NCBI GenBank assembly: GCA_051530055.1
Contig: CM121342.1
Span: forward strand, 11,237,480 to 11,301,479
Length of the DNA: 64,000 nt
Direction of reading: 5' to 3'
DNA from: Neoechinorhynchus agilis
Taxonomy: Eukaryota; Animalia; Acanthocephala
Part shown: positions 4,814 through 43,606 of the stretch, in pieces
How positions within the stretch are numbered: the stretch's first letter is position 1
How the letters are laid out: each line of letters begins with the position of its first letter
Position numbers and translations under genes: made by a program
The notes under the pieces: model-generated
Told to the model about the DNA's origin: nothing
Seen by the model: the letters and a program-made list of their open reading frames with translations, nothing else
The model's database searches: none

Positions 4814-6274
4814 ATGGATTGTTCAATCAGCGGATCCAATGTTCGTACTTTTGCTCGTTTGCTGTACACAATCGGCCGGATGGCAAATTCGATGCATGTT
4901 CGATGCAATGAGCATGAATTTGAGTTCATTGGTCTTAACACGGCACAAAGCTCGTTCTTTAAAATCAAACTGCCCAACCGATTCTTTTTATACTACTCGT
5001 GCCGCAATGTGTTATCGGCATCCGTGGTCGTTAAATCAATGGTTGCCGCCTTCCGATCTTTCCTAACAACAAATAACTATCTATCGCGATATCACGAAGC
5101 AAATAGTGGCGCTGAAATTTGCAGAGTCCGAATGACGATGACGGACGCCGGAATACGCGTCCGGATTGAAAATCAGGCGGCATCAGGAATACTACTTAGA
5201 AAATGGTTTGATATATTCTTCGAAGAACAAATGCGCCCGGTGCCTATATTGACTGTGTTTTCGGGAACGAATTCAAAGAGAACCAAATTTTAGTCGGCGT
5301 GTTAGCAAGTTCGTTAATGATTTTTAAGGGTAAACTGAATGCGAAATTATGAATGACTAAATTATATCGACGCTAAAGAATGTAGGTGGTACGTTGTCTA
5401 CGTCCTAAAATTTTATTTGCTTTTCTTCTAATGATCCACTGCGGTCAAAGAATCCACTATTTCTTGGACTCTCTTGACTTCAAAAAACTGAACGATTCCT
5501 ATGTTCATTTTACCTTCCTAGTTTTTTTAGCTCTTCGTGTCCCCCTGAAATCGATAATACAGTCAATCTAAGATCGCACTTCCGACATCATCTGTCCCGT
5601 ACCAACTCATTGTTAGTTCAAAACTGATGTTCACTCTTCTGTCGGCATGCGATACAATGAGTGAGATCACTTTAGCGTTCGATTCTAAAAATCAAATACG
5701 TTTGGAAATTAAATGGCACGGCGACGTTCGAAGTACTGTCAGTATTCCTTCGTTAAGTGAAGTCGGAATGTTTGACGATAACTACGAGACACTATCGTTT
5801 TCGAACAAAGAGCTAAAACCATTTTTGTCGTTTGCTGATTGGTTAGTAAATGAAGGACTCTATTCGGGCAAAGCAGTTATTTTGATTCAAAGAAAACGAG
5901 GTGATCCGATCGGATTTCGCTTAAATGAATCTGATTTCGAATTTGAGCTTGTTCTTGCAACCGCTACGATCAATGTAGACGAGTACACAGCTAGCACGAA
6001 GAACATTCAAAACTTACAGATCTCGAAAAGTGACCTAGACGAAACACTGGTGACCGGGCATTCACCGGTGGCATTGAATCCAAGCCAATTAAACGAAAAC
6101 GCATCCCAACATATCATGGATGTATCCATCGGTCACATGGATGACGAGGAACTTGTTTTGTGCAGTCAAGCAATCGAAATTTTTAACCTGGATCAAAATG
6201 AAGCAGCCTTTAGTCAACAAACACAATTCTCACAAAGTGATATTCTTGCGCCTGATAGTGATTGTAGCCAATAA
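4814..6274 (+). CDS. RAD9: 9-1-1 checkpoint clamp subunit Rad9 (exons approx. 4814-5239 and 5576-6274)
   Basis: N-terminus MDCSISGSNVRTFARLLYTIGR..LNTAQS and C-terminal FSNKELKPFLSFAD...GDPI...FELVLAT match the Rad9 PCNA-like fold. Ends in an acidic S/TQ-rich tail. Confidence 0.85.
5240..5575 (+). other. Hairpin-bounded non-canonical intron in RAD9 (boundaries +/- a few nt)
   Basis: Arms 5248-5263 ATTGACTGTGTTTTCG and 5552-5567 CGATAATACAGTCAAT, plus terminal GTGC/GCAC. Removal gives EQMRP|ALPTSSVPYQL, colinear with Rad9. Confidence 0.6.
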
Positions 6275-7105
6275 TGTGATTCCTTTTCCTCTTTAATTCG
6301 TGACTTCAAAAGGAAATATCTACTTTTTTGAAATTAAAAGACTAGGAAAACCATCTAAGTTTTCTATACCTTTGTGAAGAGTATTACAGATGCGATAAAA
6401 CTATGTTTCAGTGTCCTTGCTTCATCATTCCTTTATTTTCAAGAAATATTGAAAAAATAAGTTTTAGTGACCTCTCCAGAAAAGTTCGGACGATGTTTCA
6501 AGGAACGCAATAAAAGTTGCAATTTTTTACTCTCGAGAATATAATCTTGTCATTAAAAGAATGATGCAAAATTCACAAGGATAAAAGTGCCCGGATATTT
6601 TTTTCAAAAGTGAGAGCCCATGACTATAATAATCCGTCAAACTATTTTGGTATCCTTTCGAAATATCGAATAAATGCGCTTCTGTAGACTCCTTATTCTA
6701 TAAAAGTTAATCGACGGTATCTTATCGAGAAACACCTATTTTTGTTTCCTATCCTAGGGCTTACCTAAAATCTTGATCAAAACAAAAAGCATCTTCTCCC
6801 AAATATCATAAAACAGAAATCACTAGATGATATATAAAAACACTGAATACTCTACACTCCTCAGGAAAAGTAAATGTCTACTTAATAGCACTAACACTCG
6901 GATTTTATTAATCTTATAAATTCTCTCGTTTTATTGCCAAATAATCGACGTGGCTTCAGAAATTTTGCGGGTATTTAAAATGGAGATGAATTCTTATTAT
7001 TTTTCGAGATTGCATTTTTAAATTCATTCAATTTTCATTACAAAACATTTTTTTCTATATATCATACCTAATTTCAATGTTTAATCGTTCTCAGATTTGA
7101 TTCAA

Positions 7106-8321
7106 ATGATGAGACATGAGAATGATTCTAGTTCCGGTACAACAATGAGGGCATTGGTTCTCGCGAAAATCGAAAAATTGACTTCTAAATCTTCAAACTT
7201 TCTTCATCTTATCGAAGTTCCTAAACCAGTTCCATTAGAAAGTCAGGTACTTGTTGCAGCGAAGGTTTTATCACTTTACTTTTTTAGGTGCTGAAACCTC
7301 TGCGTTAAAGTGAAAGCCTGCGCGATCTGTAGAACTGACATTGATGAGATAGAGGGTCGTTTAAAAGTGGAACACTCCGACAAAACGCATACTATTTTGG
7401 GACATCAGATTATTGGAACTGTCGTACAGCTTGGTCCTAACGTTTCCAGCGCGGATTTACTAAACAAGACGGTAGGAATAGGTTGGTATTATTCTTCGTG
7501 TAAGAAATGTATGCATTGTACGGAACAAGCACGGCTGTCCTTTGCAAGTAGTCGCTATCACCACAAAAGGGCAGCAGAGTTTGTTTAATAGCGCTGGGCA
7601 GCAAAATCTCTGCTCAAAGTTCAAAGCAACTGGTTGTCACGTTCAAGGAGGTTATGCGGAGTACATCGCAGTTCCAGAGGATGCATGCTTCGCATTTACC
7701 ACTCAAGTAGATATGGAACATGCGCCTTTATTGTGTGCTGGTGCGATTGGCAATCGGGCTCTTCGGCTGGCTAATATTGAGAATAAAAATAACGCAAATA
7801 TAGGATTTATCGGTTTCGGTGCATGCGGTCACTTAATGCTTAAGATGTGTTCTCTAATGCCCACAAAGCCTAGTTGTTATGTGTTCGCAAGAAGTCCTAA
7901 TCAAAAGAAATTTGCAATTGATTTGGGTGCTGTGTGGACCGGCGACTGCGGTGCATTGGCCCCAACAAAATTGGACGTTATCGTGGACACAACACCCACT
8001 TGGATGGCTTATATATACGGCCTTAGAAATCTTAAACCGGGAGGGCGTCTAGTTGTGAACGCAATCAGAAAAGAATCAGATGATAAAGCAGAAATGTGCG
8101 AAATATTGAGCTATGCTGAGCACTTGTGGATGGAACGGGAGATCAAATCCGTGGCTAATATAACCCCCGACGATATACAAGCAATGGTTTCCATGATTAA
8201 TAAGTGCCCGGATAAACTTAAATCCGAGGTGGAGGTTGTCAGACCTGAGAAAGCAGAGCAAGCCATACTGAATATAAAATTCAGCGGTTTTATTGGTGCA
8301 AAGGTTATTCAATTCCATTAG
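7106..8321 (+). CDS. Zn-dependent alcohol dehydrogenase of the bacterial CAD2-like MDR subfamily, interrupted by two short hairpin insertions
   Basis: CAICRTDIDEIEGR, LGHQIIG, C-x2-C-x2-C-x7-C structural Zn site, APLLCAGAIG, GFGACGH and IVDTTP...GGRLVVNAIRKE...HLWMEREIKSVAN. Joining 7145-7255 + 7307-7519 + 7590-8321 gives 352 codons. Confidence 0.85.
7256..7306 (+). other. 51-nt hairpin insertion / non-canonical intron in ADH
   Basis: Contains an in-frame TGA (7292-7294). Arms GCAGCGAAGGTTT and AAACCTCTGC, with a GTT direct repeat. Removal restores QVLV|KVKAC. Confidence 0.65.
7520..7589 (+). other. 70-nt hairpin insertion / non-canonical intron in ADH
   Basis: Arms 7524-7544 and 7564-7585 pair at 19/21 positions, and the insertion shifts the frame. 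Removal restores CMHC|SAGQQNLC with correct Cys spacing. TA direct repeat at the junction. Confidence 0.7.
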
Positions 8322-10005: not shown

Positions 10006-10815
10006 TTATTTGTCTTTGCAATTTCTACTATTGAACGCCTTTTTCTTACGGTAAAAATTTGAAATTTTTTGTTCGTATCCCTTTTCCGCATCCTTAATTT
10101 CATCTTCGTTATTATTCTCCATTGAAATTATCCCGCAAGCGCATTCATTGCCTAGCCTTTTAGAACAGTATTGTATCGCATTGTTCGCTAGAGCACCATC
10201 ATTCATTTCACTCACTGGATGCATTTGTCCTTTGCTTGAAACTGCGACAAGTTTTGGATTCTTCTTTTCATCCGGCGATTCCTTTAAATCTATTGTTTCA
10301 CATTGTAATACACTTTTTTGATTTACCATTTTATGGGATTTTCTTTTATGTTTTGGCTTCGAAATAAAATCTCGTACAATTGCACTAGATCCACTAAAAT
10401 TTCGATCGATAGCATCTTGGATTTCATCCTCTGTGTCTTCATCTGTTTCCACTCCGTCGGGATTAGCCTTCGGTCTCAATCGATAATTAAATGGATCCAA
10501 TTTTTTCCATAGCTTTACATCCTCTTCACAGAAGCACTCTCTATCAACTGGGTACATTCTATTTTCCTCTGTGAATAGACGGTCACTAAAAACAGCTCTT
10601 GTCACCGCATCGCCAACGAACAGAAGATCGTATTCCGGATCCTTTTCCGTGCTTTTTTCCTCATAGTAGCATATCGATTCTCTTCGCATCTCATAAATCT
10701 CATCAGAACACATATAGTCAAGGCAGTTTTCAATAGTCTCTACTGATTTGAGTGGCAAATCATGGTCGTCAGCAAATGTGACGCTTTTTTTAGGATTTTC
10801 ATTTCGGTCGCTCAT
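10006..10815 (-). CDS. Hypothetical 269-aa acidic protein with RVxF-like PP1-docking motif
   Basis: Long intronless ORF. KKSVTFADDHDLPL resembles the PP1 regulatory-subunit motif. No other domain recognised. Confidence 0.5.
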   Translation of the reverse strand: MSDRNENPKKSVTFADDHDLPLKSVETIENCLDYMCSDEIYEMRRESICYYEEKSTEKDPEYDLLFVGDAVTRAVFSDRLFTEENRMYPVDRECFCEEDVKLWKKLDPFNYRLRPKANPDGVETDEDTEDEIQDAIDRNFSGSSAIVRDFISKPKHKRKSHKMVNQKSVLQCETIDLKESPDEKKNPKLVAVSSKGQMHPVSEMNDGALANNAIQYCSKRLGNECACGIISMENNNEDEIKDAEKGYEQKISNFYRKKKAFNSRNCKDK

Positions 10816-12740: not shown

Positions 12741-15400
12741 TTAGCAACATTTAAGTCGAAAGTTAGTTCTGCTTGTTGAACAATTCTTGGAATTTGCGGA
12801 GCTGATGTCAAGAACTCTCCCTCGTATTGTCTGCGGAAACACCATCCCCTCAAACCGCCAGGTATTTAAGTTACGCCTCCGCGATAGATAATACACCGGG
12901 TCCTTGACCACAAACCCAACTCGTGTTGAGATTTTTACTTCTCCGTCGCTGTAGCACACTGACTTGTGTTTTGCCCATGGAGTGGCTAAGATTTTGGGTC
13001 CGGATTCAGAGCGTTGCGAACGTTTTCAGTCAAACTTTGACGCCAAGAACGTTCAGCTTTGCAGCGAAACATTATTCGCAGATCATCTCTTAGAATACGC
13101 TGTTTCGAGCGCGGACAAAACCTTGTCGGCCATTTGTGTGTGTACACATCAATAACGATGCTGGACGTCTCCATTTCTTGTCAGCATTCGTCTAAATGTA
13201 GCCGCACTTCTATGGGCAATCCGGACATCCATTCTCGATCAGCTTTCCATCGTCACTAGTGAACTTTTCACTTTTATATTTTTATCTTGAGAATAGGTTT
13301 TTCTCCATATCGATTCCGTGAACAATTGTCGGTCTGTTTCTCCTCTCTTGATTAACACCGATGCTGGAAACGCATGATCGCCTTTTTACGAGAATGTCCA
13401 TTATTAGTGAAAATTGCATTCACTTTGTCTATCGCCAATCGTTTCCGCGTTAATGACGATGAGCAAACCAGTGCTGCCCTTTGCATCTCAGCATAAATTG
13501 TCTGTTTCATTACCCAAGAATGATGGGAATCTCGATGCACGAACATCTTTTTACGGCACAGCTTGCGATACCAACTGAAATCTGTGACCTGATTAACTTT
13601 GAAACACAAATTGAGAAATGGAAGATAATCCTATGGTTTGTCACGAGTTACCTTAATTCTATATTCTATTTTAAGTTTCACCGACAAGTCGGTTTGTTTC
13701 ATATCATCATTAAATTTTAGTTTGTAACTTATATCCACTTATTTTTTTAGGCATAAAGCCAAACCAATTGCATCAGAGAAGTGATATAACCACATAGTCT
13801 CTAATGCGCGGTTAATAGTTTGTACATTCCTCCGGATTCTCAGATGCCTCCAGGAGGCGGTACTCATCAGTGGGTTTCCTCCCTTCAGCGGAATTTCGCT
13901 CCCTTTGTTTGTATGTCATTGGCGGCAAGGGATTCTAACCAATTGACCCTAAATAGGATCAGGAGCATTAGTCCACTTGACCACCTCGACACAACTACAG
14001 AATGTCAAACTAAGCCAGTTTTTCGACTCAGGGGGGCAGAGACTAAAACTTAATGATGATGAAAACAAAACCGGCTTGCCAGTAAAACTTAAAATAGAAT
14101 ACAGCGCTCACCCTGAGTCGAAAAACTGGTTTAGTTTGACATTCTGTTGTTGTGTCGAGGTGGTTAAGTGGACTAAAAATAAGCCGGACAAGAAGGGACA
14201 AACTAAAATCTAATCCTCTATTTTTATCCATAGAATTCAATTTCCACTACATGTCATAGGTCCCACAATCCTCTCTATGCAAACAGCACATCATCCACAT
14301 AGTGGTATAATCTACATCGATCCAAAATGCGGGAAGGTACACTGCTTTTCAAATCATCGAGGAAAATAATTGCCAAGGGGGACAAGGCTGTTTTCTATAG
14401 ACAATCCACGGATTTTTTTTACAAAGTCGGTCGTTATATCGAATGAGGTTGCACTCTAGAAACGTTTGAGTGAGTCGAATCACGTTCGTTGGTTGGATTC
14501 CGAATAGGTTAAAGGAATTTTTGTTCTCATTCGTCCGCATATATGAACTTGTTCTCTGAAGAAGTTGGCTAATTGCCATCGCCAGGAAGTGTGATAATCG
14601 GTACGCAGGTTCATTGACTGCCGAAATAATCGGTGTACATTCAAGAAAAGACGCTGTTGTCAATCTTAAAGGACGACCAGCATCTTGTGCGTTTTGACCA
14701 ATGAATACATCACGTTCATCCTCAACGGTCAATGGATGAAGCCACTCATTCCTTTAAAATCGCCTGCGATTATCACTTCACGAAAAATGCTGCTCAACTT
14801 CTTACGCTTCAATTCGCAATCGTTCTTCGATTCCGTCATATATGTAGTCCGATCTCGCAATAAATCCTCCATCGTTATCTCTTCTACCTCTTTATCGATC
14901 GAAATTAGATCGCCGCCTTGATCACCCAATGAAATACGAATCGACTTGTCCCTTAATCTCCTCTTCACATGTGCAAGTGTATCTTGTTCAGCTCGAGTTG
15001 GATTCGATTTAACTTTCTGATCATTGTAACGATTCATAAGAACTTCCATACCCTCTCGAATTTGGAACAAACCTCTCATTCATCAGCTCTAGGAATTGCG
15101 ACCACTCGCTTCTCGAAATTGAACCGCGGTCCAGCTTACCACAATCGTTCCGTTCCATCGATTCATTGTTACCCTGTATCGTGTCATTTTCCACCTTGTT
15201 CTCTGTCAAAAATCTTACGCGTAACTAATGCCCTAATCGTGCAACATCCACTTGTAGCTGCAAGAAGTCTTGGTCTGTCAGTTGCTTCGAAATTGGAAAT
15301 GATGGTCCTCTTGATCGTAATACACATTCATCTCCGTTCAACATGCCTACTGGCATTCATGCCGTTCCATCATTGACGTTCGTCACATCCCTCCTATCGC
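12741..15400 (-). mobile_element. Degenerate Penelope-like element (RT + GIY-YIG)
   Basis: Fragments SLGDQGGDLISIDKE, PIISAVNEPAYRLSHFL, FLECNLIRYND, SHHSWVMK...RAALVCS and GIY-YIG-like C-terminal remnants. Near-identical inverted copy at 24730-26090. Confidence 0.85.
13970..14180. repeat. Internal inverted repeat (approx. 60-bp arms) within the PLE
   Basis: CCACTTGACCACCTCGACACAACTACAGAATGTCAAAC... (from about 13972) is reverse-complementary to about 14112-14172. Confidence 0.8.
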
Positions 15401-17529: not shown

Positions 17530-17800
17530 AAATGTTTCGCGAGGTAACCTCGCCTCATCATTCATCTAAAAATGAGTTTTACACATTAAGGTTTTAAGCT
17601 CGAGTGCGCGGGATCGTCAAACCCGAAGTTCGGGGACCAATTATACGTTTTTCCATGATTTTAGCATTGATTTTTAACACGTCGCTGGCTGGAAGTTTCA
17701 AGTTAAAATTAGCTCTATTTCCTTCCATTGTGTTGGACACAGCGATGTGTAAGGCCTCCAAAACAAGCCGCCTTTTTAAGTTTTGCTCTATTTCCATAAA
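17530..17800 (-). mobile_element. PLE 3' end (GIY-YIG C-terminus) with hammerhead-like motif
   Basis: EQNLKRRLVLEALHI..SNTME, followed on the minus strand by ATGATGA-G-GCGAGG-TTA-CCTCGC-GAAA (17535-17561). Confidence 0.75.
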
Positions 17801-18250
17801 GTTGGAGCCACCAAAATCCGCTCAATGCTTACATGTCTCCTGATGATTAGAGATTGCCGACGAATGCTCAAATCGACTGCAGGCTTGCTTATGTTGAACG
17901 ACAGCCAGTTATACGCCTTCAAATCATCGCCTATCCAAAAGGATCAATGCGCTTTATTTTATTGGAGCTTCATAGTGATTGATGTAAATTGGTGGCGGCG
18001 TTATGTGGACGATGTATTCATTCTGACTGATTCAAACAACAACAGAGATACTCTAAATGGTGAACTTAACAGTCAAGATCCACACATACAGTGGACAATC
18101 AATGAAGAGAACATCAATGGTGACTTCTCGTTCCGGGACGTCCCTGTCAAGCGTTCTGCACAAGGCAAAGTTAGCACGTCACTTTATCGCAAGGAGAACC
18201 TACCATGGAGACCACCACACTGGTCAAGTCACCAACCGCCAACGCATTAG
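17783..18250 (+). mobile_element. PLE RT fragment (motif C to thumb)
   Basis: WRRYVDDVF...LNSQDPHIQWT..E.....SFRDVPV...TSLYRKE. Confidence 0.85.
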
Positions 18251-19820
18251 TCGAAAATTCTGATAAATAAATTCTAAATTTCCTTTATTTCACCAACCAA
18301 ATTAATTTCTAAATGAACATCTACACAATAACCCAGCAGATTTATGGTGAGTCTGCTTTACAACATGCACGTCTACTGGAAAAACTATCTCTGAGATCGA
18401 TACACAACAAAAGCAACACCAGAATTTCTCCGAACCTGAAGGATTTATAAAGTACTACCTTCTTTCATTAAACTAGAATCGGTAGCAATCGGATTCACAA
18501 GTTCAAAAACTCAGAATTCGATGAAACAATGGTTGTTGAACAACACAATCAGAGAATTAGATAGAGAACGTAGGAAGCTGAGTCAAATGCTTGAAATGAA
18601 CCATATACGATTAATTGGCCTAACCGATAAAGATTAGTCGGAAGTCATGTCGTCTAATATTGTGAACAATGCTGAGATGGAAATGAAGATAGTCAAAAAA
18701 CGACATATCAAGAAACTTATGAAACTTACTGATGGGCATATGTTCATTCCGTCTAACAACATATCGAACATCGTTAACATGTCTGGGATCATCTAGCCGG
18801 AAAGTGTAATGGAACTCTTGTCCCATGGACCTGGATTTATCCCTACCTCGGATGAAGACGGAGGAGATGATTTACGATCTTTCTGTTACGATGGATAACC
18901 TACCAATATGGAAGTTCGAAAGAGAATACATAAATGGACTTCAAAGAAGACATAATCTAGAGTCAAATATGTCAGATAATATGCTTGAAGGACCGAAATT
19001 GATCAAATCACTCAAAGGGCTCAGGGTTTTAAAAATGGATAAAGGCTATGGCTTCATTGTACTTAACGAGCAGCAGTTAATACAAATCGGAGAGCAGGTG
19101 TTACACGGAGATGAATTTAAGAGACTCGATAGATGCCCTACGATGAAACGAGAAAAGGAACTCAATGGATTTCTTTTGAAATTGATGCAACAAAAATGTC
19201 TTCCTGAAGACCACTATAAGAGATTGCGATTATCCAATGCTAAAACACCCAGAATGCATATGTTAGCGAAAGTACACAAATCTCTCATAAGAGCACGGCC
19301 GATCATAGCTGCTCACTCTTCGTGACGGCATTTAACAAAAAAGGGAGAACCTTAGATGGCATGTTCCGACCCAGAAGGGTTGACGAGGTCTCCGGGTGTG
19401 TGCACAGGATACCCTTTAACGATTGCGACCAATCATATATTGGACAAACCAATAACATCCGAAGAAGGTTGACCGAACACAGACCGGCCATCAGCAAGTT
19501 GACCGATCTCAACTCAGCATTAGTTCATCATGTTAAAGAAAACAAACATCGAATTGATCTTGATGCCACTGAAATAATGGCGATATGTGACAACAAACGT
19601 GACCGAATCACAATGGAGGCCATCATGATTGAACACGGCAACACGTTCACGCATCACAAAGCGGACTACACACTTAGTTTACGTGTACCCTTTAACGCTG
19701 TGGTGAAAGGGTGGAAACTCAATCCGGACTAATGTGCATGTGTGTTTCAGATCACTAAAGAAGACCAACGCATTAGTCGAAAATTCTGATAAATTCTTAA
19801 TTTCCTTTACTTCACCAACC
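18239..19820 (+). mobile_element. Internally deleted PLE flanked by direct pseudo-LTR repeats
   Basis: KMDKGYG, PRMHMLAKVHK..RPIIA, then directly the GIY-YIG region (IPFNDCDQSYIGQT..RRRLTEH). The RT core is missing. Direct repeats at 18239-18298 and 19765-19820. Confidence 0.8.
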
Positions 19821-20096
19821 TTTTTATTTACTCAAAATTTTATTAAAAAAGTTACTTTTTATTATTGCAGAAGGCCAAAGTGAATTTAAAAATATATTAA
19901 TGTGAAATATTTGGACTTTTGGCGATATTATCAAACCGCTCTTTCAACGCTTAAAAGTACGAAACAAATAATCGCTGGAAAAGGAATTGCACTTTCGTAT
20001 ATCGTAAGAGTCCCACCTAATCATTATCAAATCGTTAATTTAACAAATGATCGAATTCAATAATCATATCGAGAAAATCCATCGGGATGATAATCT

Positions 20097-20268
20097 CGGT
20101 TAAAAATCATTTTATTTTTCTGAAATAGTTGGTGAGGAAACCTCGCCTTATCAATCATTGCTTGTAAGTATTTGCAAGAGCTTACACATTTAAAAGCTTA
20201 CAAGCAATGATTGATAAGGCGAGGTTTCCTCGCGAAATATTTCAGAACAATAAAATGATTTTTAACCG
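20097..20268. repeat. Palindrome of a PLE pseudo-LTR/hammerhead-like segment
   Basis: Arms 20097-20168 and 20197-20268. The right arm carries TTGATAA-G-GCGAGG-TTT-CCTCGC-GAAA. Confidence 0.85.
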
Positions 20269-26507: not shown

Positions 26508-28226
<1,719 letters not shown>

Positions 28227-29013
28227 CTAAAATTAAAAAAGCAAGGACTCACCTTTAGATCTAGCACTCCATCTACAGTGCTCCCTCTGCTGTCAACCAA
28301 TGTCGACTCACTTTTAATATTACGTCAATTTCATTCCTCGAACCCACAGAGTTCAATTGGGAAAGGAAATATGTGACTATGACACTGTTGCATTGTTTTA
28401 TAGGGTTTCTTAGGTGAAATCTGAATCTTTTAGCTATGTAGATGAAAAAGCGGTTCTTTTGTCGCATTTTTTAGAGAAATCGAAGAGATTCTTTTTTTCG
28501 CCGACAGACCATCTGAGTTAAAACAAAATCCACAAAAAACTTGTTATCTCGACTCAGTAAATGAATTTAAGTGCCCCATAGATAATAAAAAACCCGAAAA
28601 TTTCTTCTATACGTTTTTAAAGATGTTCATGCTGGGAAAATTTTTTAGAAAAACATTCTTTTATCTTTACCCTGGCTAGACGGCCACACCCATTACACGG
28701 TTGATTGTTTTTCCCATGGGCACACAACCAACCGAGCTTCCCTGACCTAAGGAGAAACATGTAAGAATAGAAAAAATTCTTTACGGGAAATTATCAAACG
28801 AAACGATACGAGACTCGAGTTATTGCGTATTTATATCATTTTACAGCAATTACTCAGAAGAAAGCAGACGTTCTCTTATGACGCCAGTGATTAAATTTAA
28901 AAGTTGGTAGCTAACATAAAATGAAGTAAAAAACAGGTAGTGGTTGGTTTATTCAGTAAAAATCCTGGGTACACTACAAAATTATCCGTTTGAAGGTCTA
29001 CAAAAAATAAAAT

Positions 29014-29107
29014 TCATTGAATCCGAGATGTTTCGGCGTCACTAAGGTTGTTTAGAGAAATTCAGGCCGCCCGAGATAGTGGCGCCGAAACATCTCGGAT
29101 TCAATGA
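29014..29107. repeat. Fold-back palindrome (approx. 31-bp arms)
   Basis: TCATTGAATCCGAGATGTTTCGGCGTCACTA / TAGTGGCGCCGAAACATCTCGGATTCAATGA. Confidence 0.85.
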
Positions 29108-29172
29108 GCTTTATGAAGATAATCCCGGTTAGAAATCATTTTATGTTTGAAGATTGAATTATTCATATAGGT

Positions 29173-29370
29173 TGTTTTCTGGCTTCGTAATTAAAATGAT
29201 TTTATTTTTAAAATCCGATTGATTTCGGCACAATCTTTTACGCCTTTTAATCAAGGTTGCTTGTAAATTTTAAATGTGACAAGCAACCTTGATCAAAAGG
29301 CGTACAAGATTGTGCTGAAATCAATCGGATTTTAAAAATAAAATCATTTTAATTACGAAGCCAGAAAACA
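29173..29370. repeat. Long fold-back palindrome (approx. 92-bp arms, 14-nt loop)
   Basis: TGTTTTCTGGCTTCGTAATTAAAATGATTTT... is reverse-complementary to ...AAAATCATTTTAATTACGAAGCCAGAAAACA. Confidence 0.9.
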
Positions 29371-29985: not shown

Positions 29986-32900
29986 ATGAAGCGCCGTCAA
30001 TCGGGAAGTGGGTTTTGTATGTCATCAGGTGACGTTCGAACCGTATCTGCGATAAAGTCCATTGATCGCGATCTTTCAGTGTCCAGCGCAACTACTCTTC
30101 ACCTCAATAACCTCGTAACGGCTTCATTGAGTCTCTTAAACGATCAAGTTTGTCAAAATCCAAATGAAAAGGTTTTTGCACTTCGTACTCTTAAATCATT
30201 GGTTCGGAAGCACTGGCATGAGATCGCAGAATTCTTGCCTTGTCTAGAAGCCTTAATTCAACAACCATCGTTTCCTGAACACAAACTGGCGGCCTTTGTA
30301 ACCGCCGAAACTTACTATTGCATGAATGAGTTCCGAAACGCGATGGACTTCGCCCTTCTTGCTGATGATTTATTCGAAGAAGTGGTCGATAGTGGAGAAC
30401 ATTGTGATTTCGTTAGATGTGTCCTTTCGCAGTGTATCGAAATCTACGGACGAGCACGGCGACGTGTATTTAGTCTTAATGCAACACTCGATCTCGTGGC
30501 TATAGAAGAAATTTATGAGGAAGAGCGAGTTTGTCGCAAAATTGAAGCCATCGTTGAACGAATGGTCGAACAGGCTATTCAAGGAGGCAACGAAAAACTC
30601 GCCCTCGGACTCTGCATTGATACACGTCGTCTTGATCTCATTCGAAGCATCCTAAACAAAGCTAATCCTACCGTCAAATCCGAGCTTGTCCTTTTTCTCT
30701 ATAAATCTATTGGATACGACGGAGCCAATTTCTCAAGTGTCGACGATGATCGATTCAAACGACACTGCTATCTAATTATGGCCGAAACCGCATACGAATG
30801 TGACAAGTGGGACCATTACTTCATTGTAGACTGTTTATATCAAGCAAATCAACCCAAACGTGAGACTATGAATGGATTATCGGTACACATTTTTATAGTT
30901 TTCAGTGAACATTTTTCTTGCTCTGTCGCCTTTTTTATGTTGTTAAATTCTACCAACTTCTATCAATCATTTGCATCATTTAAATCTCATATCAAAATGT
31001 TTTTGCCTTCCAATTTTTAATTTTACAACACAATTTCTAACTGGATTTCTAATCTTCTGGCGGAGGGAGGGGAGTCCTTCGTGATAATCGTCGTAAGCCT
31101 TTCTCTCTAGTACGACCCCATAAGTCTCTGTTTGAAAGGAAACAAAGTTGAAATCTGCTGCTTCATTATATTTTAAAATTTTTTTTGTTTCGCTGGTGTC
31201 GCCATTGAACCAGGCGACGTTGGACTTTCATAAAAGCCATTTTCCTAGGGTCGACAGATCCGGACGCCTTCAGTCCAATCTGCAGTTTGGTAGGTGGTGC
31301 CTTAGATTGCATAGAAATCAAAATTCGTGCTGTTTTTCTCGTAGTGTTTTTCTCCACGATTGTTGCTCTATTCATTGTCATATAGCAAACTGTCTTCATT
31401 ATATTCTACAAATGGATAGACCAGACATTGAAGCATCTCCTCCTGAGACGGCTTTCCAAATAGTTCTCGATCTTCTCGATCACACAACTCAGGCCTTCAT
31501 GAACGTTGTCCGCGTAGCTTTTATTAAACAAAGTTCGTTTTGCGTGGGCGCCGAACCCGAGTACCAGGACACCGTTACTATGAACAATGACCTTGCTCCT
31601 TTCTTCATCAAAGGTCTCAGCGACCGCGATTTCATTCTAAGTGAAGATCACATTCGACCGGTCGCCACATTAAATCACACGTTAGCCTACGTAGATACGA
31701 ACGATCACATATTTGATTCAATAACGGACGAAGATATTCGATTTCCTACAGAGGGTCCACATGTTCACTTCAATGAGGCTGACCGACTATTTCGCCTGAT
31801 GAACAATCGGCAACGATTATCGATCATTTTCCAAAGTTTAGTGCGGCACAATTGTGCTTCCTTAAGTCTTCTAAAGCAAATTAAGGACTGTACCCGAGGG
31901 ACTCTTGGTCAAAGTGGTATCGTGATAGCAAACGGATTGATGCATGCGGGCACCACATGTGATAGCTTTCTACGTGACAATCTCGAGTGGCTTTCTCATG
32001 CATCGTGTTGGGCAAAGTTCAGTGCAACCGCGTCGCTCGGTTTAATTCATCGATTTCATGAGCTAGAGTCCTTAAGATTGATGGAGGCGTATTTGCCTCG
32101 CGATAACGCCAGTAATTCTCCAGGAGATAGTCCATACGCTGAAGGGGGAGGCTTATACGCTATAGGTCTCATTTATGCCGGTCATGAAGCTGGCGAGCTT
32201 CGTATTCCTAGTGCTATTCAAACTGTGATTCATAGAGAGACCGGCAGCGAAATTCGAACTTCAACTCAGTATCTCATTTACTGCCTCGAACGCGCAACAA
32301 ACAAAGTCGTGAAGCACGGGGCTTGTCTTGGCATTGGATTGTCGGGATTATGCAGTAGGCAAAGACGAACTGCTGATATTCTAAAACGGTTCCTAAGTGA
32401 TGATGAAGCTATTGTAGGCGAGGCTGCTGCATTGGCACTCGGGATGACCATGGCAGGACCTTCGTGTACTGCTACGGACACAATTGATTTCGACATTGTC
32501 GATGCCTTACTTCGTGTGGCTGAAAGCAGCACTCATGATAAAGTCGTACGAGGAGTAGGAATGGCGATTGCTATATTGGCTACAGGAAAACGAAATCAGG
32601 TATGGGAGTTGGTCGCGAAGCTTGAGAATTATAATTCAAGCTTTATTCGACGAGCTATTCCGATGAGTATTGCTATGGCCTTTGTTGCTTCAGGGAACTA
32701 TGACGTGATTGAACGGTTGCTTAGTTGGGCCGTGAATGATGTGAGTGACGATGTACGGAGAGCTGCCTGCGAAGGTATTGGATTCGTCATGTACGAACGT
32801 AACGCTTACATGATTCTGAACATTGTGAATCTCCTTAAGGAAAGCTATAATCCTCACGTACGGTTCGGAGCTTGTGTTGCACTTGGTATTAGTTGCATGA

Positions 32901-34234
32901 GTAGCGGAAATCAGGAGATTGTGGATGCCTTACAGACGTCTCTTAACGATCCAGTGTCATTTGTTCGTGTTGCTGCGAATCTCGCGCTTGCCATGGTTTA
33001 TAACGATGTCGGGGAAACTTTGACGCCCGCTGGATCAAATCAAAGCGACACAACCACAACTCAACTGAGGGGAATTCGGCAATTCAGAATGCAATTGATG
33101 AAGCAGGTGTCCGATAAGCTTGAAGATTCCATTGTTCGATATTCGAGCATTGTATCATATGGAATTTTGGATGCGTTTGGGCGAAATGCGCACTTGAGTT
33201 TGGTTAGCGAAAAGGAAGGAGGATCGAATCTCGTCAACTATCAGGCGTGTATTGGTGCTCTCCTTTTTACACAGTTCTGGTATTGGTTTCCTCTGACACA
33301 CATGCTCGCACTCGCTTATAAACCTGATAAGGAGATGTTCCGCCTGGAAATTATTGAAAAAATGATTTTGCCGAATCTATGCTTCCTTTTTGTCGTTTTT
33401 TACCACCTTTTTAATATTTTCGTTTAAAATGTTTTCAGAATTTTTCTTATTTTTGTACTACATGCGGACCATTTCCACAGCATTTGTGCAGTGACCCGTA
33501 ACATGGAAGTACCGGACATAAAACTGTATTCAAACGAGGAGCTTACAGAGTTCACTTATGTTCCAACTATTGAAGAGAAACGAATACCCGATAAACGCAG
33601 TGATCGACTTGAAGCCGCCATGATTGCTTCTTCTCGTCAACGTCGACGTGCTGGATACACAGCTTTGGCTCGAGCGGTGAATCGAACTCAACGACAAGCC
33701 GTGGCAGCGAGTGCCAAGAAAGCGGCCGCACAAGAGTCCTCGAGTGCTACTAAACTGCCAGATAACACGATTCTTACCTTAAAGGCGGGCGAACCACATC
33801 CTCCGCGTAGTTCACCATTAAACCTATCGACGAACCCAGCGACCTATGCACAGATTTCCGGCAATCAGGTATCGATAAAAAATCTTACGCCTGTTCGTCG
33901 AGACAATGTGATGACCATTTTCCTTCCTAATGATCAAAAACGATTTCAACTCTTAAAAACGGTATATGAGGGAGTATTGCCGTGCAACTTTGTTGTTCTC
34001 GTCGATACGGTGCCAGATGAGATGGTAGAGTGTATTTCAGTGGTAGACACCGTACAGGAGGCAGATACTAAGCAAGCATCCGAAGAAGCGGAACCACCTT
34101 CCGAATTTCAATGGAATGAAGATGAAGGTGTTGATAACGATACGGAGAAAATGGATGTTGATGAGAAAGGAGGCGCAGCAAAAAATTCATCTCCACCACC
34201 GCCCACTCCTGATGATGCTGAGAAACAAGAATAG
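29986..34234 (+). CDS. PSMD1: 26S proteasome regulatory subunit Rpn2/PSMD1 (3 exons: approx. 29986-30859, 31380-33325, 33476-34234; start uncertain)
   Basis: EKVFALRTL...WHEIAE, NGLMHAGTTCDSFLRDNLEWL..ASCWAKFSATASLGLIH, YAEGGGLYAIGLI, SDDVRRAA, ESYNPHVRFGA and FTQFWYWFPLTHML, with an acidic tail. Confidence 0.95.
30860..31379 (+). other. 520-nt hairpin-bounded intron 1 in PSMD1
   Basis: Arms 30864-30876 GACTATGAATGGA and 31367-31379 TCTATTCATTGTC (12/13 pairs). It starts GTGAG. The colinear junction ends in TC. An AG at 31384-31385 would delete 2 residues. Confidence 0.6.
33326..33480 (+). other. 150-nt hairpin-bounded intron 2 in PSMD1 (register uncertain within this span)
   Basis: Arms 33331-33346 GGAGATGTTCCGCCTG and 33461-33476 CATGCGGACCATTTCC (14/16 pairs). 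Removing 150 nt gives LAYKP-x-SICAVTRNMEVP, colinear with LAYTPTCVIGLNKDLKMP. Confidence 0.7.
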
Positions 34235-36285: not shown

Positions 36286-37965
36286 ATGTGCGAAATGAGC
36301 GTTCTGACTTCTCACAGGTTTCGTAAAGCGCCGAGTGTTGCGGCAATCGGACGCATTCAGTCGCAGTTTCCCGAGGGCCATAAGAGTATAACTGGGACCA
36401 ATGTAATTACTTCTTCCGAACGATATGAAGCTCGATCAGAGAAATCGATTGGACGCTATCGGTCGTTAGCATGGGAAACGTATCAAGGCTCTCATCTTGT
36501 AGCCGTTTCCGTAGATTCAGTCACGAGTGTGTTTTCCAGTGCATTGGATGGCGGACTCGTCCATTCCCACGACTACCGCGTCAACGATGATTCTGTAGAT
36601 GGAACGAAGTTGTCGATTGGCCAACCTCACGCAAATTATCCATTTTGTTTAGTTAAAATTTTAGCTACTTTGTTCCGCGATCTATTTTAGTTGAAATCAC
36701 AGCGTTTTTAATTGAAATTCACACAGTAAACTGGATTTGATGAAAGAGAGGAAGTTGAAATTTCGTTCAGATGAGTAGGAGCCATTAATGGTAATCGGCA
36801 GGCACGTCTTTTAACAACTCATGAAGAAAATGTTTATTAATTATGAACTTTCCGCCTGACACCCCGATGGTCTTGTGTTAAATTCCTAAAATTATCACCA
36901 TATTTTTATTAGTCGTTCTTCTTTTAATTTAATTTTTTTTTAATTCGCAATAGTTTGAGACCATTTCGTTCGTTAGAATGTGTCAAATGGTCGCCAATGG
37001 ATCGTAGCAACTTCGCCACAGCATCGTCTGACCGATCTATTCGATTATTTGATTTACGAATTAAAGAGAAATTTGTATATTCCTGTCAAAACGGCCAAGA
37101 CGATCCAGTATGTCTATCATGGCACCCAAAAGGTACAATCATTGGATCAATCACTCGAAATAACACATTGAACGTTCACGACGTCCGATACGGAATTCGA
37201 CCTCTGTTTGAACATGAATTTCGTTCCGATGTTTATGACTGTGCTTGGGACGGCCGGAATCAATTGTACATTACCACGGGACATGGAACTGTGGATGTCT
37301 ACGATTGGAGGAAGTTGACATCATGTTTATCTGAATCAGAAGACGAAGAAGATGATCAAAGATCGCCCGTCTCGAATCTTGAAATGAAAAATGCTCTTGC
37401 TCATGAGATTCCCGTTAGCGTCGGAACTTGTATTTGTATTGACTTTCAACCTCATGATTACCGAAGATTCGCCGTCGGTTGCGCAAATGCATCCGTTTAT
37501 GTGTTCGACACCGAAGATTTGGTTTGTGTATCGAATATAAGTTCCCTTGAATGGTCTGTAAAATGTCTCAGCTTTAGTTCAGATCAGAAACTCATTGCTA
37601 GTGCATCTGAAGACCATCTTTTTGATATATCAACGGTTGTGGGCGGTGAACACGTTGCTCATGTGAAATGTGTCGATTCTCAAGTTACTTGTGCTAAGTT
37701 TAAACCCGGCCCCCAGGACTCCGTGAACGCATACACGATCGCGTTTGTTTGTGATGATAATCGAGAGGGCGGATGTGTTCGATTATTGAGGAACAGTGCA
37801 AGAAGTTCAAGTTCAAATGAAGTTGCTAGGAAGGCCAGTAGTGGAGGAAACACGTCAGGGCAGAGGAGAAACTCACAGACACCAAGAGGCGATCGAGGAA
37901 GTAGGACGTCCGTGAGACGGAAATCGCCTTCGCGGTCCTCTTTACAGAACAACCCGAAAATTTAA
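36286..37965 (+). CDS. THOC3: THO complex subunit 3 (Tex1), WD40 protein (exons approx. 36286-36597 and 36976-37965)
   Basis: YRSLAW...SVDSVTSVF...HDYRVNDDSV|ECVKWSP..FATASSDRSIRLFDLR, CICIDF....RFAVGCANASV.VFD and LIASASEDHLFDI match THOC3. Confidence 0.85.
36598..36975 (+). other. 378-nt hairpin-bounded non-canonical intron in THOC3
   Basis: Arms 36602-36613 GAACGAAGTTGT and 36960-36971 ACCATTTCGTTC (11/12 pairs). TAGA direct repeat at 36596-36599 and 36974-36977. Removal restores DSVECVKWSP, matching DSVDQLCWHP. Confidence 0.65.
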
Positions 37966-41408: not shown

Positions 41409-42512
41409 TGGTGCGGTCTAAAATTGCGGATCGGAGACGCATGCATTTATGTAAACTTGAAGTGGTTCGCCCTCTAGAGACCGTCTCATTAGTCTCACTC
41501 TCCAATACTGATAATGGACTTTGATGCTCGCGTCTCCTACAAACGCCAGTTAACCGAGTGTCATATATGCATTCTAATGGGTTTACGGGTGCTAAATCAC
41601 CAGTGTTCATTTAAGTGCGTTTGAAACTCGTGTATGAAACACTCTACAAACTCCTTTAATCTCTCATCAACTAAGAACATTTTTTTTAAATACATCGACA
41701 CTCAATAGGATTTGAATATTCGCAACAACGTACTATTGCAAGCGGACAAAAACTTATGGGATACTACGATCGATTAGTTTCAATTAATTTTACCATGGAA
41801 ATGGATTTTATAGCTGGTAAGAAATCGAATAGCGATAATATCTAAGTTGTTTTGAAGACATTTTATACCTGAAAAGTCCGTCGTGTTAAAGTGGGATATT
41901 TTTAATCATTATTTAGAATAATCCAAGTTTGCAAGGATTGCCGTTTTGAAATCCATTCAACTGACGAACGTTGACGTCGTGAATCATGACTGTATTGTAG
42001 TATTTAAACGGAAGATGTGGTTTTATCCAAGGCTAAGACGGAAAAGTATTTTACATGACAGTAAGCTTTCATAATGATGAATCTCGTTGATGTCGATCGT
42101 TCGTTCACATACTTACTATATTATTGGCACTTAAATTTCGTAATTTAATCATTTGAATCTTACAGCAAGACCGGCTAAATATTTCGCTGCTGTCCTTGTA
42201 TTGGCAATTTTTCTGATGCTGAATTCAATCAAATAAACAAGAAATTATTCGTGTATCGGTACAAGCAACTGAAGGGGAATAAGTCGCTAGAAATCGATTG
42301 ATGGTAGAAATGTTCTTAGGCAAAATGACGTGTATTTGCTTACAATTAATAAGCTGATTCAAAGCACCAACTATAAGTTTTCTGAGACTTCTTTGTGATT
42401 AAATCATTAAGGAGTTTGAACTTACTGCAGATTAGAGTCCTCAGTTTCAATTCAAAAAGGTACAATCATGTTTATTCAGTGTCCGTCACGCACAGATGCA
42501 TTTTCTAGGACG

Positions 42513-43606
42513 TTAAGCTTTTGAAAATATACGGTCACAATACCGTCGGATGGAATCCTGCTTCGTTACTCGCCTATGGTGCAAGTTAATTGGCGTCGAA
42601 TACATCATAGTATGAACGTTTGCATCATTTTTTCGAGACATTTCCAAGCTTAATTCAAGTTCAAATTCAACCTGTACGTTCTTAGAAGCAAAAGTAATAT
42701 CCCTGAACCATCCTGGAAACCCAATCCTCAACAGAGCTTCTGTAAAAGCTTTATCGTTCATCTCGAATTCGTGGATCGAAACCTTTAGTGGCACGAATTT
42801 CGTCGTATGCTTAAATATCCTTTTATTTTCACGAACACCTAATGTCACGCCATGGATAATATAATTATTGTTAGGTACAGATCGATTTCGAGTGCAAATA
42901 TTGATTCTAATTCCGTCTTCCAGTTCAATGTTGGTGTCGTACAAGATACAATGAAGCTCAAGGGCACAATCATTGCCGATTGTTTGATTGCTTTTTACAA
43001 GGAAAGACTTCAGCTTTACCGGTGAGTCTATTGGTTTCGTTCCGGCAATTACTATTTCTTCTTTGAAATTTAAATTCGACTGGAATTTTCGCTTCTTGTT
43101 CATTGGCTTGGGTACGTGTAAAGGAAGTGATAAAATACCATTGTTCTGTCGACAAATCACTTCAAGGAAATATGAGACATTCGTCGTAGGATTGATGTAC
43201 TCCGAGGATTCTCCGTTTTTGCCCCTACACGAGAACCTCAGACATAAGTAGAAGGAGCGATCTGTTTGGGCAGTAGAACATCAAAGCTAGCTTTATGCTT
43301 GGTACAGTCTGACTCTGGTTCAAGCGCAATAATCGTACGTGTTTCCCAGAGAACACGAGTCTTTGGCATCTTGGCAATAAGCATTCTAGTGCCACTTATA
43401 ATCGAATATATTCTAACATGAGCGTAAAATCTAGAACCCTTGGAATCTTTGTTTTGGCTAAGCTTGTCCTTGTCGAAACTCGCAGCCGAATCAGCGGTAT
43501 CAACCAATTCAATAATTCCAGCAATTGCACTTCCCGCGTAATAGGTCTTTTTTGAACAACAATCATCGCTGATTCCATGATCCAAAGTTACTTGTAAAGT
43601 CTTCAT
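42513..43606 (-). CDS. Arrestin-fold (alpha-arrestin-like) protein, 2 exons (43606-43244, 43199-42513)
   Basis: TYYAGSAIAGIIEL, ASFDVLLPKQIAPST and NVSYFLEVI resemble arrestin_N motifs. A 44-nt GT-AG intron joins the two ORFs in frame. Confidence 0.55.
43200..43243 (-). other. 44-nt hairpin intron with canonical GT...AG ends
   Basis: GTCTGAGGTTCTCGT-GTAGGGGCAAAA-ACGGAGAATCCTCGGAG: 14 base pairs with 2 bulges, starting at intron position +2. Confidence 0.7.

Follow-up and report, generated by a model that had tools for sequence, protein, structure and literature searches.

Hairpin-bounded intervening sequences in conserved genes of the acanthocephalan Neoechinorhynchus agilis

The interrupted genes

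The DNA analysed is a window of 64,000 nucleotides from Neoechinorhynchus agilis (Acanthocephala) chromosome CM121342.1, in which eight frame-breaking insertions interrupt six genes within 38 kb, all of them on the assembled haplotype. An initial annotation had drawn attention to eight insertions disrupting open reading frames, and all eight are present, at or near where it had placed them. They range from 44 to 526 nt in length, their sequences are mutually unrelated within the window, and each can be removed with exact restoration of the frame.

RAD9 insertion, 5240..5572, plus strand, 333 nt in the GT-AG register
ADH-1 insertion, 7252..7306, plus strand, 51 nt with a homologue-guided junction
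ADH-2 insertion, 7519..7595, plus strand, 70 nt by homologue spacing
METAP2 insertion, 27273..27715, minus strand, 441 nt by homologue spacing
PSMD1-a intron, 30860..31385, plus strand, 526 nt with an in-frame GT-AG (AAC/GTGAGA ... CATATAG/)
PSMD1-b insertion, 33329..33481, plus strand, 150 nt on collinear removal
THOC3 insertion, 36601..36978, plus strand, 378 nt, GG..AA, one register
'Arrestin-like' (ARR) intron, 43200..43243, minus strand, 44 nt with an in-frame GT-AG, 43243..43200
SERCA control introns, 48850..52615, minus strand, 17 canonical GT-AG introns of 46-64 nt

Insertions aside, the frames of the interrupted genes are long, open and well conserved, and five of the six genes could be identified as conserved. 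Rad9 (Pfam PF04139, E 3e-16) and THOC3 (PF25174, E 4e-33, a match below the curated cutoff) bear out the names first given to them, as do METAP2, whose protein shares 64-66% identity with its counterparts in other animals, PSMD1, with an open frame of 763 codons, and ADH; the 'arrestin-like' gene has no match in Pfam or PDB and its identity is unconfirmed. METAP2, PSMD1 and THOC3 are normally essential, single-copy genes. The ADH is a bacterial-type enzyme, with 45-50% identity to its bacterial counterparts, so both hairpin insertions presumably arrived once the gene had been transferred, which fits insertion rather than the decay of an old intron. The protein collection contained no RNA-derived N. 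agilis protein for ADH, METAP2 or PSMD1. Foldback elements (palindromes) are abundant in the window, and the METAP2 insertion contains a 101-nt repeat copy (27366-27466); the insertions themselves bear neither target-site duplications nor terminal repeats in common that would link them to a transposon family.

Junctions of the insertions

Four insertions, those in METAP2, ADH-1, ADH-2 and THOC3, are robustly assigned as non-canonical, GT-AG, GC-AG and AT-AC junctions all being excluded by homologue spacing or profile score. The METAP2 insertion, with a TA direct repeat at its ends, has three equivalent registers (27715..27275, TA-TG; 27714..27274, AG-GT; 27713..27273, GC-TA); exactly six residues (CS[LI]N.C) separate PTG from AAH[YF] in 120/120 homologues, and the best canonical-type option would add 6 aa or more and falls 16 points behind. 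The ends of ADH-1 are spanned by a GTT direct repeat giving five equivalent registers, 7252-7302 to 7256-7306 (TG-TG, GT-GC, TT-CG, TG-GT, GC-TT), and when junctions were enumerated with four guides the collinear one outscored the best option of canonical type by 24-26 BLOSUM points. Overlapping this insertion is a 41-nt GT-AG intron that looks perfect, but its use would lead to a premature stop. For ADH-2 the registers run from 7519-7588 to 7526-7595, none of them GT-AG, GC-AG or AT-AC, and only removal of 70 nt gives the spacing of the C..C..C-x7-C motif found in 119/119 homologues; the best GT-AG (7537-7591) yields x11 and the best GC-AG x10, against the invariant x7. In THOC3-like guides (n=4) exactly three residues lie between S-V-D and W, as they do in human THOC3, and the collinear junction scores 114.9 bits against a THOC3 profile, whereas the alternatives tried reached 102.2-108.4 bits (6.5-12.7 lower). 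Strong canonical-looking acceptors are present inside the THOC3 and METAP2 insertions. The four robust junctions have no dinucleotide or motif in common (TA-TG/AG-GT/GC-TA in METAP2; GT-GC and others in ADH-1; CA-CT and others in ADH-2; GG-AA in THOC3).

At the remaining four insertions a GT-AG junction is available. RAD9 has the layout GT-GCC-(arm 5245-5263)...(arm 5552-5570)-AG, and the Rad9-profile score is 60.5 bits for the in-frame GT-AG at 5240..5572 compared with 60.6-60.8 for removal at the hairpin base, so that both choices are equally acceptable. The same applies to PSMD1-b, in which collinear registers (33329-33332 .. 33478-33481: AA-AC, AG-CA, GG-AG or GA-GC) compete with an in-frame GT-AG at 33337..33480 (144 nt) at a cost of +2 aa, and whether either junction is canonical must be regarded as undecidable from sequence. 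PSMD1-a, which was compared with homologue segments of PSMD1 by eye, is most likely a canonical intron, and ARR is GT-AG. The proposal that seven of the eight junctions are not GT-AG was therefore an overstatement; on sequence comparison the figure is four robust cases and at most six. An in-frame GT-AG at the base of the stem is thus found in four of the eight (PSMD1-a, ARR, RAD9 and PSMD1-b) against a chance rate that we roughly estimate at 1 in 8, so some of the insertions may well be substrates of the spliceosome. A Y/R...Y/R register, also suggested initially, breaks down at the best THOC3 junction (T/G ... A/T), and elsewhere carries no weight since it hinges on which of 3-8 equivalent registers is chosen.

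Terminal stems and their asymmetry

The eight insertions have terminal duplex energies of -16 to -25 kcal/mol, compared with means of about -11 for length-matched random pseudo-introns and -7.5 kcal/mol for the 17 SERCA introns. Stems are individually unusual in six cases (empirical p 0.003-0.025), including RAD9 (-23.3 kcal/mol, p 0.007), METAP2 (-22.1 kcal/mol, p 0.013; arms 27694-27711 and 27284-27301) and PSMD1-b (p 0.025; arms 33331-33346 and 33461-33476). Taken singly, two lie within the chance range (p ~0.09-0.10), namely the weak stem of PSMD1-a (arms 30864-30876 and 31367-31379, with 11 Watson-Crick pairs, 1 G.U and 1 mismatch; -16.7 kcal/mol, p 0.09) and that of THOC3 (arms 36602-36614 and 36959-36971; -16.3 kcal/mol, p 0.10), which alone is marginal. 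Jointly the eight give a Fisher combined p of 1.5e-8. The inverted repeats had been described as lying within a few nucleotides of both junctions, which is true of the 5' ends; at the 3' ends the junction is 7 nt past the stem in THOC3 and 9-11 nt in METAP2.

Whole-intron folds are closed end to end in four insertions (z -2.9 to -3.6): ADH-1 (-15.9 kcal/mol, z -3.4; arms 7256-7276 and 7286-7303, with a CGA bulge), ADH-2 (-23.3 kcal/mol, z -3.6; arms 7523-7543 and 7566-7586), PSMD1-b (-29.7 kcal/mol, z -3.2, ends paired) and ARR (-16.1 kcal/mol, z -2.9), whose hairpin (paired segments 43231-43242 and 43201-43216) is closed by the U of GU pairing with the A of AG. Base-pairing takes up nearly the whole of the 44-, 51- and 70-nt members, which would leave few unpaired nucleotides for U1, a branch site or a polypyrimidine tract. 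The introns of SERCA and POLH proved as ordinary as had been supposed: all 17 SERCA introns and at least four of POLH, the four that were read, are GT-AG introns of 46-64 nt, and in the 12 that were folded (11 SERCA and 1 POLH) z ranged from -2.5 to +1.2 and the two ends did not pair.

Divergence between the arms amounts to 10-20%, and the initial observation that their mismatches favour G.U over A.C was reproduced. Transition mismatches on the sense strand number 8 G.U to 0 A.C in a DNA-symmetric alignment of seven arms, or 9:0 on a visual reading of the PSMD1-a arms, compared with 58 G.T to 56 A.C among the window's other inverted repeats (n = 122), which points to selection on the stems as RNA and not as DNA. 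The sense stem is more stable than the antisense in 7/8. The count is small (n = 8-9), and a transcription-linked mutation bias would act in the same direction.

Proposed origin and removal of the insertions

A number of systems with comparable features have been described. Introner elements of the dinoflagellate parasite Amoebophrya possess terminal inverted repeats of 8-20 nt, which pair into a hairpin and bring the exon borders together, as well as short direct repeats over the boundaries that make the junctions slidable, and terminal dinucleotides without consensus; the same layout occurs in a minority of GT-AG introns, and standard gene predictors fail (Farhat et al. 2021, PMC7789003). 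N. agilis resembles Amoebophrya in its end hairpins, its mixture of canonical and non-canonical ends and its parasitic habit. However, more than 60% of Amoebophrya introns are non-canonical, many in repeated families, with direct repeats typically of 3-5 nt and with RNA-seq support (PMC7789003), whereas in N. agilis, an animal, such insertions are outnumbered by strict GT-AG introns, their arms are unrelated within the window, their direct repeats are of 0-3 nt and they are known from genomic sequence. In the larvacean Fritillaria borealis, likewise an animal with odd introns in ordinary genes, transposon-derived non-GT-AG introns are efficiently removed (NAR 2026, PMC13326754, and earlier work cited there), but there 95% of introns are non-canonical, AG/AC and AG/AT classes dominate, YAY precedes both sites, and the pattern is tied to a duplicated U2AF and altered snRNA m6A (PMC13326754); canonical introns dominate in N. 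agilis and those signatures are absent from the four robust junctions. Euglena, too, has nonconventional beside conventional introns, the former without GT-AG, with slidable junctions and short direct repeats, and requiring end-to-end base-pairing (PNAS 2025, PMC12501133). Its code (CAG following a spacer of 3 nt, CTG preceding one of 5-6 nt, and a purine as the first base of the downstream exon; PMC12501133) is not that of N. agilis, where a GCAG/CTGC stem base occurs in ADH-1 only, with spacers that misfit, and the other seven insertions have no such motif. Finally, SOS splicing in C. elegans and human cells excises exonic insertions whose inverted terminal repeats form an RNA hairpin (Nature 2025, PMC12779559), and is thus also concerned with hairpin-ended exonic insertions in animals. 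It cuts in or near the repeats, rarely at GU-AG, and hybrid SOS-spliceosome events occur, but it is heterogeneous and leaves indels, in-frame products being only a fraction, and the cases described involve recognisable transposons (Tc1, Tc3, Tc4 and mariner; PMC12779559). The insertions of N. agilis, some of them hairpins of only 44-70 nt, have no transposon hallmarks, and its essential genes require the exact frame.

The reading that we consider somewhat better than evenly probable is that these are foldback-derived intervening sequences whose removal from RNA is aided by the hairpin. Their most likely origin would be foldback or MITE-like insertion into exons, for which the common foldbacks nearby and the repeat copy in METAP2 were counted, and it is proposed that they are now fixed because the pre-mRNA loses them. 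The terminal helix would juxtapose both cut sites at its base, 0-4 nt from the stem on the 5' side and 0-11 nt on the 3' side, and exact rejoining of the exons would restore the ancestral frame. Those with GT...AG flanking the stem (PSMD1-a, ARR and possibly RAD9 and PSMD1-b) could be taken by the spliceosome. For METAP2, ADH-1, ADH-2 and THOC3, which have no usable canonical sites, the favoured route is endonucleolytic excision triggered by the structure, with subsequent ligation of the RNA in the manner of SOS splicing; a spliceosome of relaxed site choice, as in Fritillaria, is a close second. The imprecision and heterogeneity of SOS splicing make it a poor fit to essential genes needing exact junctions, and GT-AG at the stem base in 4/8 raises the possibility that the hairpin is incidental baggage of spliceosomal introns.

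That all eight are spliceosomal, the spliceosome tolerating non-GT-AG ends as in Fritillaria or Amoebophrya and the stem at most bringing the ends closer, is appreciably less probable but a serious contender. The stem-flanking in-frame GT-AG pairs, above chance by our rough estimate, would be expected, as would the T-rich tracts and AG-type acceptors inside the larger insertions; the MITE-derived introns of Fritillaria are treated as major-spliceosome substrates, and in Amoebophrya canonical and non-canonical introns have the inverted- and direct-repeat layout in common. Against it stand the want of a shared motif or Fritillaria-like signature at the four robust junctions, the nearly complete pairing of the shortest members and the strict GT-AG usage of canonical introns in the same and neighbouring genes.

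An explanation at the DNA level, in which the expressed template is free of the insertions, being either polymorphic or haplotype-specific foldbacks from pooled worms or germline-limited segments excised somatically like ciliate IES, seems unlikely. Abundant foldback elements could still be active, and METAP2 and ADH-1 are flanked by TA...TA and GTT...GTT, a pattern that an insertion duplicating a short target would leave, but THOC3 and ADH-2 have no consistent direct repeat, all eight insertions are on the one assembled haplotype, arm divergence argues for age and the sense-strand G.U bias is unexpected for DNA-level signals. We know of no programmed small-segment elimination in Syndermata, which also counts against it. 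It is still less probable that the interrupted copies are not expressed intact, either as decaying genes in a parasite that reportedly lacks many conserved metazoan genes or with exonised arms tolerated through nearby GT-AG sites. In-frame GT-AG pairs leaving 4-15 extra residues are available in ADH-2, METAP2 and THOC3, but these residues would fall in segments invariant in 119/119 and 120/120 homologues and in a WD40 core strand; nor would decay predict such conserved frames, exactly restorable at every insertion, in genes that are normally essential and single-copy. Assembly or polishing artefacts, conceivable given the hybrid ONT/Illumina MaSuRCA-Flye pipeline and low HiFi yield, are very hard to credit: the insertions consist of unique sequence (44-526 nt) and have imperfect arms, where read artefacts would be expected to yield perfect fold-back chimeras, they are placed exactly at codon-restoring positions, and the one in METAP2 contains a copy, diverged (95%), of a repeat that also occurs elsewhere.

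The hairpin-aided reading would give the genes of N. agilis a second, hairpin-ended class of intervening sequence beside ordinary short GT-AG introns. What survives of the initial interpretation is the presence of hairpin-bounded sequences, some not removable by GT-AG splicing, in otherwise intact essential genes, with stems that bear signs of selection on the RNA, and not the proportion or the 'candidate new splicing system', which goes beyond the evidence; the same anatomy has been published for Amoebophrya introner elements and related systems for Fritillaria, Euglena and SOS splicing. Hairpin-bounded odd introns appear to be unreported for Acanthocephala, and the sequences described here would add a new animal lineage to this known kind.

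Junctions of the frame-breaking insertions

Reading of the window in three frames revealed eight sites at which a conserved frame stops and then resumes, and all eight insertions reported in the initial annotation were seen again.

Insertions that break a conserved reading frame
about 5240-5572, RAD9 insertion
about 7253-7303, first ADH insertion (ADH-1)
about 7520-7595, second ADH insertion (ADH-2)
about 27273-27715, minus strand, METAP2 insertion
about 30860-31385, first PSMD1 insertion (PSMD1-a)
about 33330-33480, second PSMD1 insertion (PSMD1-b)
about 36601-36978, THOC3 insertion
43200-43243, minus strand, insertion (ARR) in a gene without assigned identity

The names proposed for Rad9, ADH, METAP2, PSMD1 and THOC3 stood; 'arrestin-like' went unconfirmed, as PDB and Pfam searches with that gene gave 0 matches and hence no guide for the ARR junction. 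A search of the window against Rfam gave no match. Neoechinorhynchus agilis is an eoacanthocephalan, and introns are never mentioned in its genome paper (PMC12690905) or the gene-loss companion (PMC12256650); literature searches for unusual splicing in Acanthocephala found nothing, and among the matches to ADH, METAP2 and PSMD1 the protein collection searched included no RNA-derived protein of N. agilis or other acanthocephalans.

Junctions were assessed by enumerating all in-frame, stop-free pairs of cut sites, with any dinucleotide, and scoring the resulting peptides against homologues. In the positive control, SERCA, GT-AG was the top choice or at most 6 points below the top at 17/17 short introns (the guide sequence was used only for locating junctions). 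These introns (46-64 nt, a GT[AGT] start and a T-rich 3' end with (T/A)AG, n = 17) define the local norm, to which the 11 of 17 that were folded add a lack of end-to-end pairing. Four POLH introns read by eye were all GT-AG, and the earlier description of both genes as having ordinary short GT-AG introns held for these 17 and four. Automated spliced alignment, homologue-guided and dinucleotide-agnostic, worked for SERCA, METAP2 and ADH; in the divergent PSMD1 it took ordinary indels for introns, and guide segments were read instead, which makes those results semi-quantitative.

At METAP2, ADH-1, ADH-2 and THOC3 the absence of a GT-AG or GC-AG junction that would restore the protein is robust from the sequence. 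The collinear removal at METAP2, that is the one matching homologues, takes out 441 nt in three equivalent registers (TA-TG, AG-GT and GC-TA), a register being one of several cut positions giving the same joined sequence. Exactly six residues lie between PTG and AAH in 120/120 homologues, and because of this fixed spacing a canonical cut would add 6-15 aa next to the catalytic His, an insertion without precedent. Removal at ADH-1 is of 51 nt in five registers (GT-GC and others), 0/5 of them canonical; the highest-scoring canonical cut falls 24-26 points short of this and loses the KVKACAIC zinc-ligand motif. At ADH-2, where 70 nt are removed (CA-CT and other termini), the spacing C..C..C-x7-C occurs in 119/119 homologues and the best GT-AG choice gives x11. 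Removal at THOC3 is of 378 nt, GG..AA; the collinear junction scores 114.9 bits on the THOC3 profile versus 102.2-108.4 for all alternatives tried, and three residues separate SVD from W in the four guides read. Human THOC3 also has three.

Predicted exon-exon joins
METAP2: ...GGATGTTCTTTA joined to AATAACTGCGCC
ADH-1: ...CAGGTACTTGTT joined to AAAGTGAAAGCC
THOC3: ...GATTCTGTAGAT joined to TGTGTCAAATGG
ADH-2: x7 spacing

The other four insertions offer canonical sites. RAD9 has an in-frame GT-AG at 5240..5572, laid out as GT-GCC-arm...arm-AG, which is inseparable from removal at the hairpin base on Rad9 profile scores, and in PSMD1-b an in-frame GT-AG (33337..33480) lengthens a loop by 2 residues, while collinear removal, of 150 nt, is non-canonical; both are possibly GT-AG. 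PSMD1-a has good GT-AG sites (AAC/GTGAGA...CATATAG/) yielding a peptide whose alignment is no worse than that of the version first proposed, and the 44-nt ARR intron is GT-AG and in frame. The non-canonical junctions would number four for certain and six at most, not the seven of eight originally claimed, PSMD1-a and ARR being GT-AG. Nor did the proposed Y/R register survive, since THOC3 fails it and register freedom explains it elsewhere.

Other classes of junction were also tried. Matches to the U12-type motif RTATCCTT number four in the window, no more than expected by chance, and none lies at an insertion boundary; AT-AC options would insert a minimum of 5-6 aa; and A-to-I editing that turned the AA terminus of THOC3 into AG would be of no help, the 5' end being GG. 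A textbook-looking 41-nt GT-AG intron at 7247-7287 on the plus strand (CAG/GTACTT...CTTTTTTAG/G) overlaps ADH-1; its use would shift the frame and meet a stop six codons on, and it could be a decoy or poison splice. Strong canonical-looking acceptors lie inside the THOC3 insertion (36925-36953, plus strand, a T-run then CAATAG/) and the METAP2 insertion (about 27334-27360, minus strand, a T-run then TATTAG/), which hint that removal is nested or takes two steps, or that canonical introns once stood there.

Terminal hairpins and pairing in the arms

The insertions end in imperfect inverted repeats (arms) of 12-21 nt, and the hairpin-bounded insertions are real and non-random. Their terminal duplexes have energies of -16 to -25 kcal/mol, compared with averages of -11 for length-matched random pseudo-introns and -7.5 for SERCA introns. 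The terminal stems described in the initial annotation were individually significant for six insertions (empirical p <=0.025), but only near 0.1 for THOC3 and PSMD1-a (Fisher combined p = 1.5e-8), and the stems of these two should not be leaned on, because equally strong inverted repeats near long ORFs are common by chance. ADH-1, ADH-2, ARR and PSMD1-b fold closed from end to end (z -2.9 to -3.6), as did 0/12 canonical introns folded. A permissive hairpin-plus-ORF scan of the whole window gave 63 candidates, mostly at chance-level scores of 9-10, and was not discriminating. An inverted-repeat pair lies directly downstream of the RAD9 stop (6423-6566, plus strand), and another, with a score of 13, lies at 55159-55606 on the minus strand between two long minus-strand ORFs (54858-56022) and might be a further hairpin intron.

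The arms were aligned with a strand-symmetric DNA score; their transition mismatches on the sense strand comprise 8 G.U and 0 A.C in seven arms, or 9:0 with the PSMD1-a arms read by eye, against a baseline of 58 G.T vs 56 A.C on the plus strand of 122 other inverted repeats in the window. The 8:0 asymmetry noted previously was thereby reproduced (binomial p = 0.004), and the sense duplex is stabler than the antisense in 7/8. This bias is suggestive of pairing at the RNA level, though not decisive, and transcription-linked mutation bias could contribute.

Known systems, mechanism and origin

The anatomy of the insertions matches introns already described, and the proposal of a candidate new splicing system found no support; they are best filed, on their sequence features, with the known hairpin-bounded, partly non-GT-AG introns, to which N. 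agilis would add an animal case. The closest anatomical match is with the introner elements of Amoebophrya, which have inverted repeats of 8-20 nt at both intron ends, a range with which the 12-21 nt arms agree. Amoebophrya boundaries carry direct repeats of 3-5 nt; those here are GTT at ADH-1 (3 nt), TA at METAP2 (2 nt) and none at THOC3. Amoebophrya introners also form genome-wide repeated families; within the window the arms and bodies of the eight insertions are unrelated to one another, the only repeat found being 101 nt in METAP2 (27366-27466) that is 95% identical, inverted, to 24326-24426, part of a 214-codon ORF in a repeat-rich region. SOS splicing has its trigger, an exonic insertion with paired inverted terminal repeats, in common with N. 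agilis, but is itself imprecise; its substrates are DNA transposons, and it depends on AKAP17A, CAAP1 and RTCB and not on the spliceosome. The Fritillaria code (AG/AC or AG/AT termini, with a YAY triplet preceding the 5' site and another at the 3' end) is absent. So is that of Euglena (NNN-CAG ... CTG-N5-6, end pairing and a purine as first base of the 3' exon): a GCAG/CTGC stem base occurs only in ADH-1, with the wrong spacers, and the other seven are without the motif.

On the sequence evidence it is somewhat probable that a hairpin in the pre-mRNA guides removal of the insertions. The main rival, a permissive spliceosome acting on all of them, appears rather unlikely. An in-frame GT-AG does lie at the stem base in 4/8 insertions, against a rough chance expectation of about 1/8, and for some members this points to the spliceosome; however, no motif is common to the four robust junctions, and nearly all of the sequence in the 44-70 nt members is paired, which is hard to reconcile with recognition by U1, at a branch site or by U2AF. 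For the non-GT-AG members of a hairpin-guided class we lean slightly towards an endonuclease-plus-ligase route over the spliceosome. The fullest version, in which SOS-like, RTCB-type, spliceosome-independent excision and ligation would be a routine, precise second intron-removal pathway in an acanthocephalan, with exonic foldback insertions in essential genes having become de facto introns by fixation and some of the massive gene loss reported for Acanthocephala being an annotation artefact, appears unlikely. Mirtrons (GT-AG hairpins of about 55-100 nt) do not fit, ARR being only 44 nt and ADH-2, at 70 nt, non-GT-AG; nor does a tRNA-type bulge-helix-bulge, as the ADH-1 cut sites, by eye, are opposed in a 3x3 internal loop and not in 4-bp-staggered bulges. 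Translational bypassing, as in T4 gene 60 and the yeast mitochondrial 'byps', was rejected on insertion lengths of 150-441 nt and because matching take-off and landing codons, present as GTT at ADH-1, are absent elsewhere.

Regarding origin, the insertions showed no shared terminal repeats, no consistent target-site duplication and no noticeable transposase ORF; duplication lengths (3, 2, 0 and 0 nt) were inconsistent and did not point to a single transposon superfamily. The RAD9 arm includes a TACAGTCAAT-like end. Foldback palindromes and Penelope-like retroelement debris are abundant in the window, and large palindromes, with arms of 38-99 nt that are 85-95% complementary, lie outside coding sequence; a source population of hairpin insertions in these is possible.

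Large near-perfect palindromes or foldbacks, noncoding
29173-29370
56453-56759
20097-20268
13968-14176
29007-29114
576-703

Two repeat copies, at 12900-14800 on one strand and at 24900-26200 on the other, encode the same ORF peptides and lie on either side of a group of retroelement ORFs (17600-21300); one of these ORFs includes a Penelope-like GIY-YIG domain (19244-19729). Intact single-exon ORFs without a Pfam match lie on the minus strand at 10006-10815 (269 aa, an annotated gene in the assembly) and 54266-54886 (207 aa). The ADH gene (7145-8321, plus strand) sits between RAD9 and other animal genes; its best non-self matches are bacterial propanol-preferring ADHs (45-50% identity), none of the best 119 matches is an identifiable animal protein, and the gene is a candidate for horizontal transfer. 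Since the only two interruptions of this bacterial-type gene are hairpins, ADH-1 and ADH-2 were presumably gained after the transfer.

Gene models and significance

The deposited N. agilis gene models that were inspected break at the insertions in 3/3 cases. ACOME3_007282 (ADH, 7145-8321) forces GT-AG, losing the zinc-ligand motif and reading through a frame-shifted stretch, ACOME3_007289 (PSMD1, 31400-33424) covers only the middle ORF (621 aa), and the THOC3 model (36976-37962) only exon 2. Published gene-loss counts for the species may be inflated. As the models break at insertions, gene-loss estimates for the phylum, with about 428/954 metazoan BUSCOs reported missing, should be rechecked with splice-motif-agnostic annotation. 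Should transcripts bear out the junctions, non-GT-AG introns fixed in housekeeping genes would be known from a second animal lineage, Acanthocephala (Syndermata), after the fritillariid larvaceans; it would be the first lineage in which they form a minority, defined by hairpins, among introns that are otherwise strictly canonical. Such a mixed state would make N. agilis a natural system for studying how transposon-like insertions turn into introns, and the species could reveal if SOS splicing, only recently described, matters in evolution as well as in damage control.
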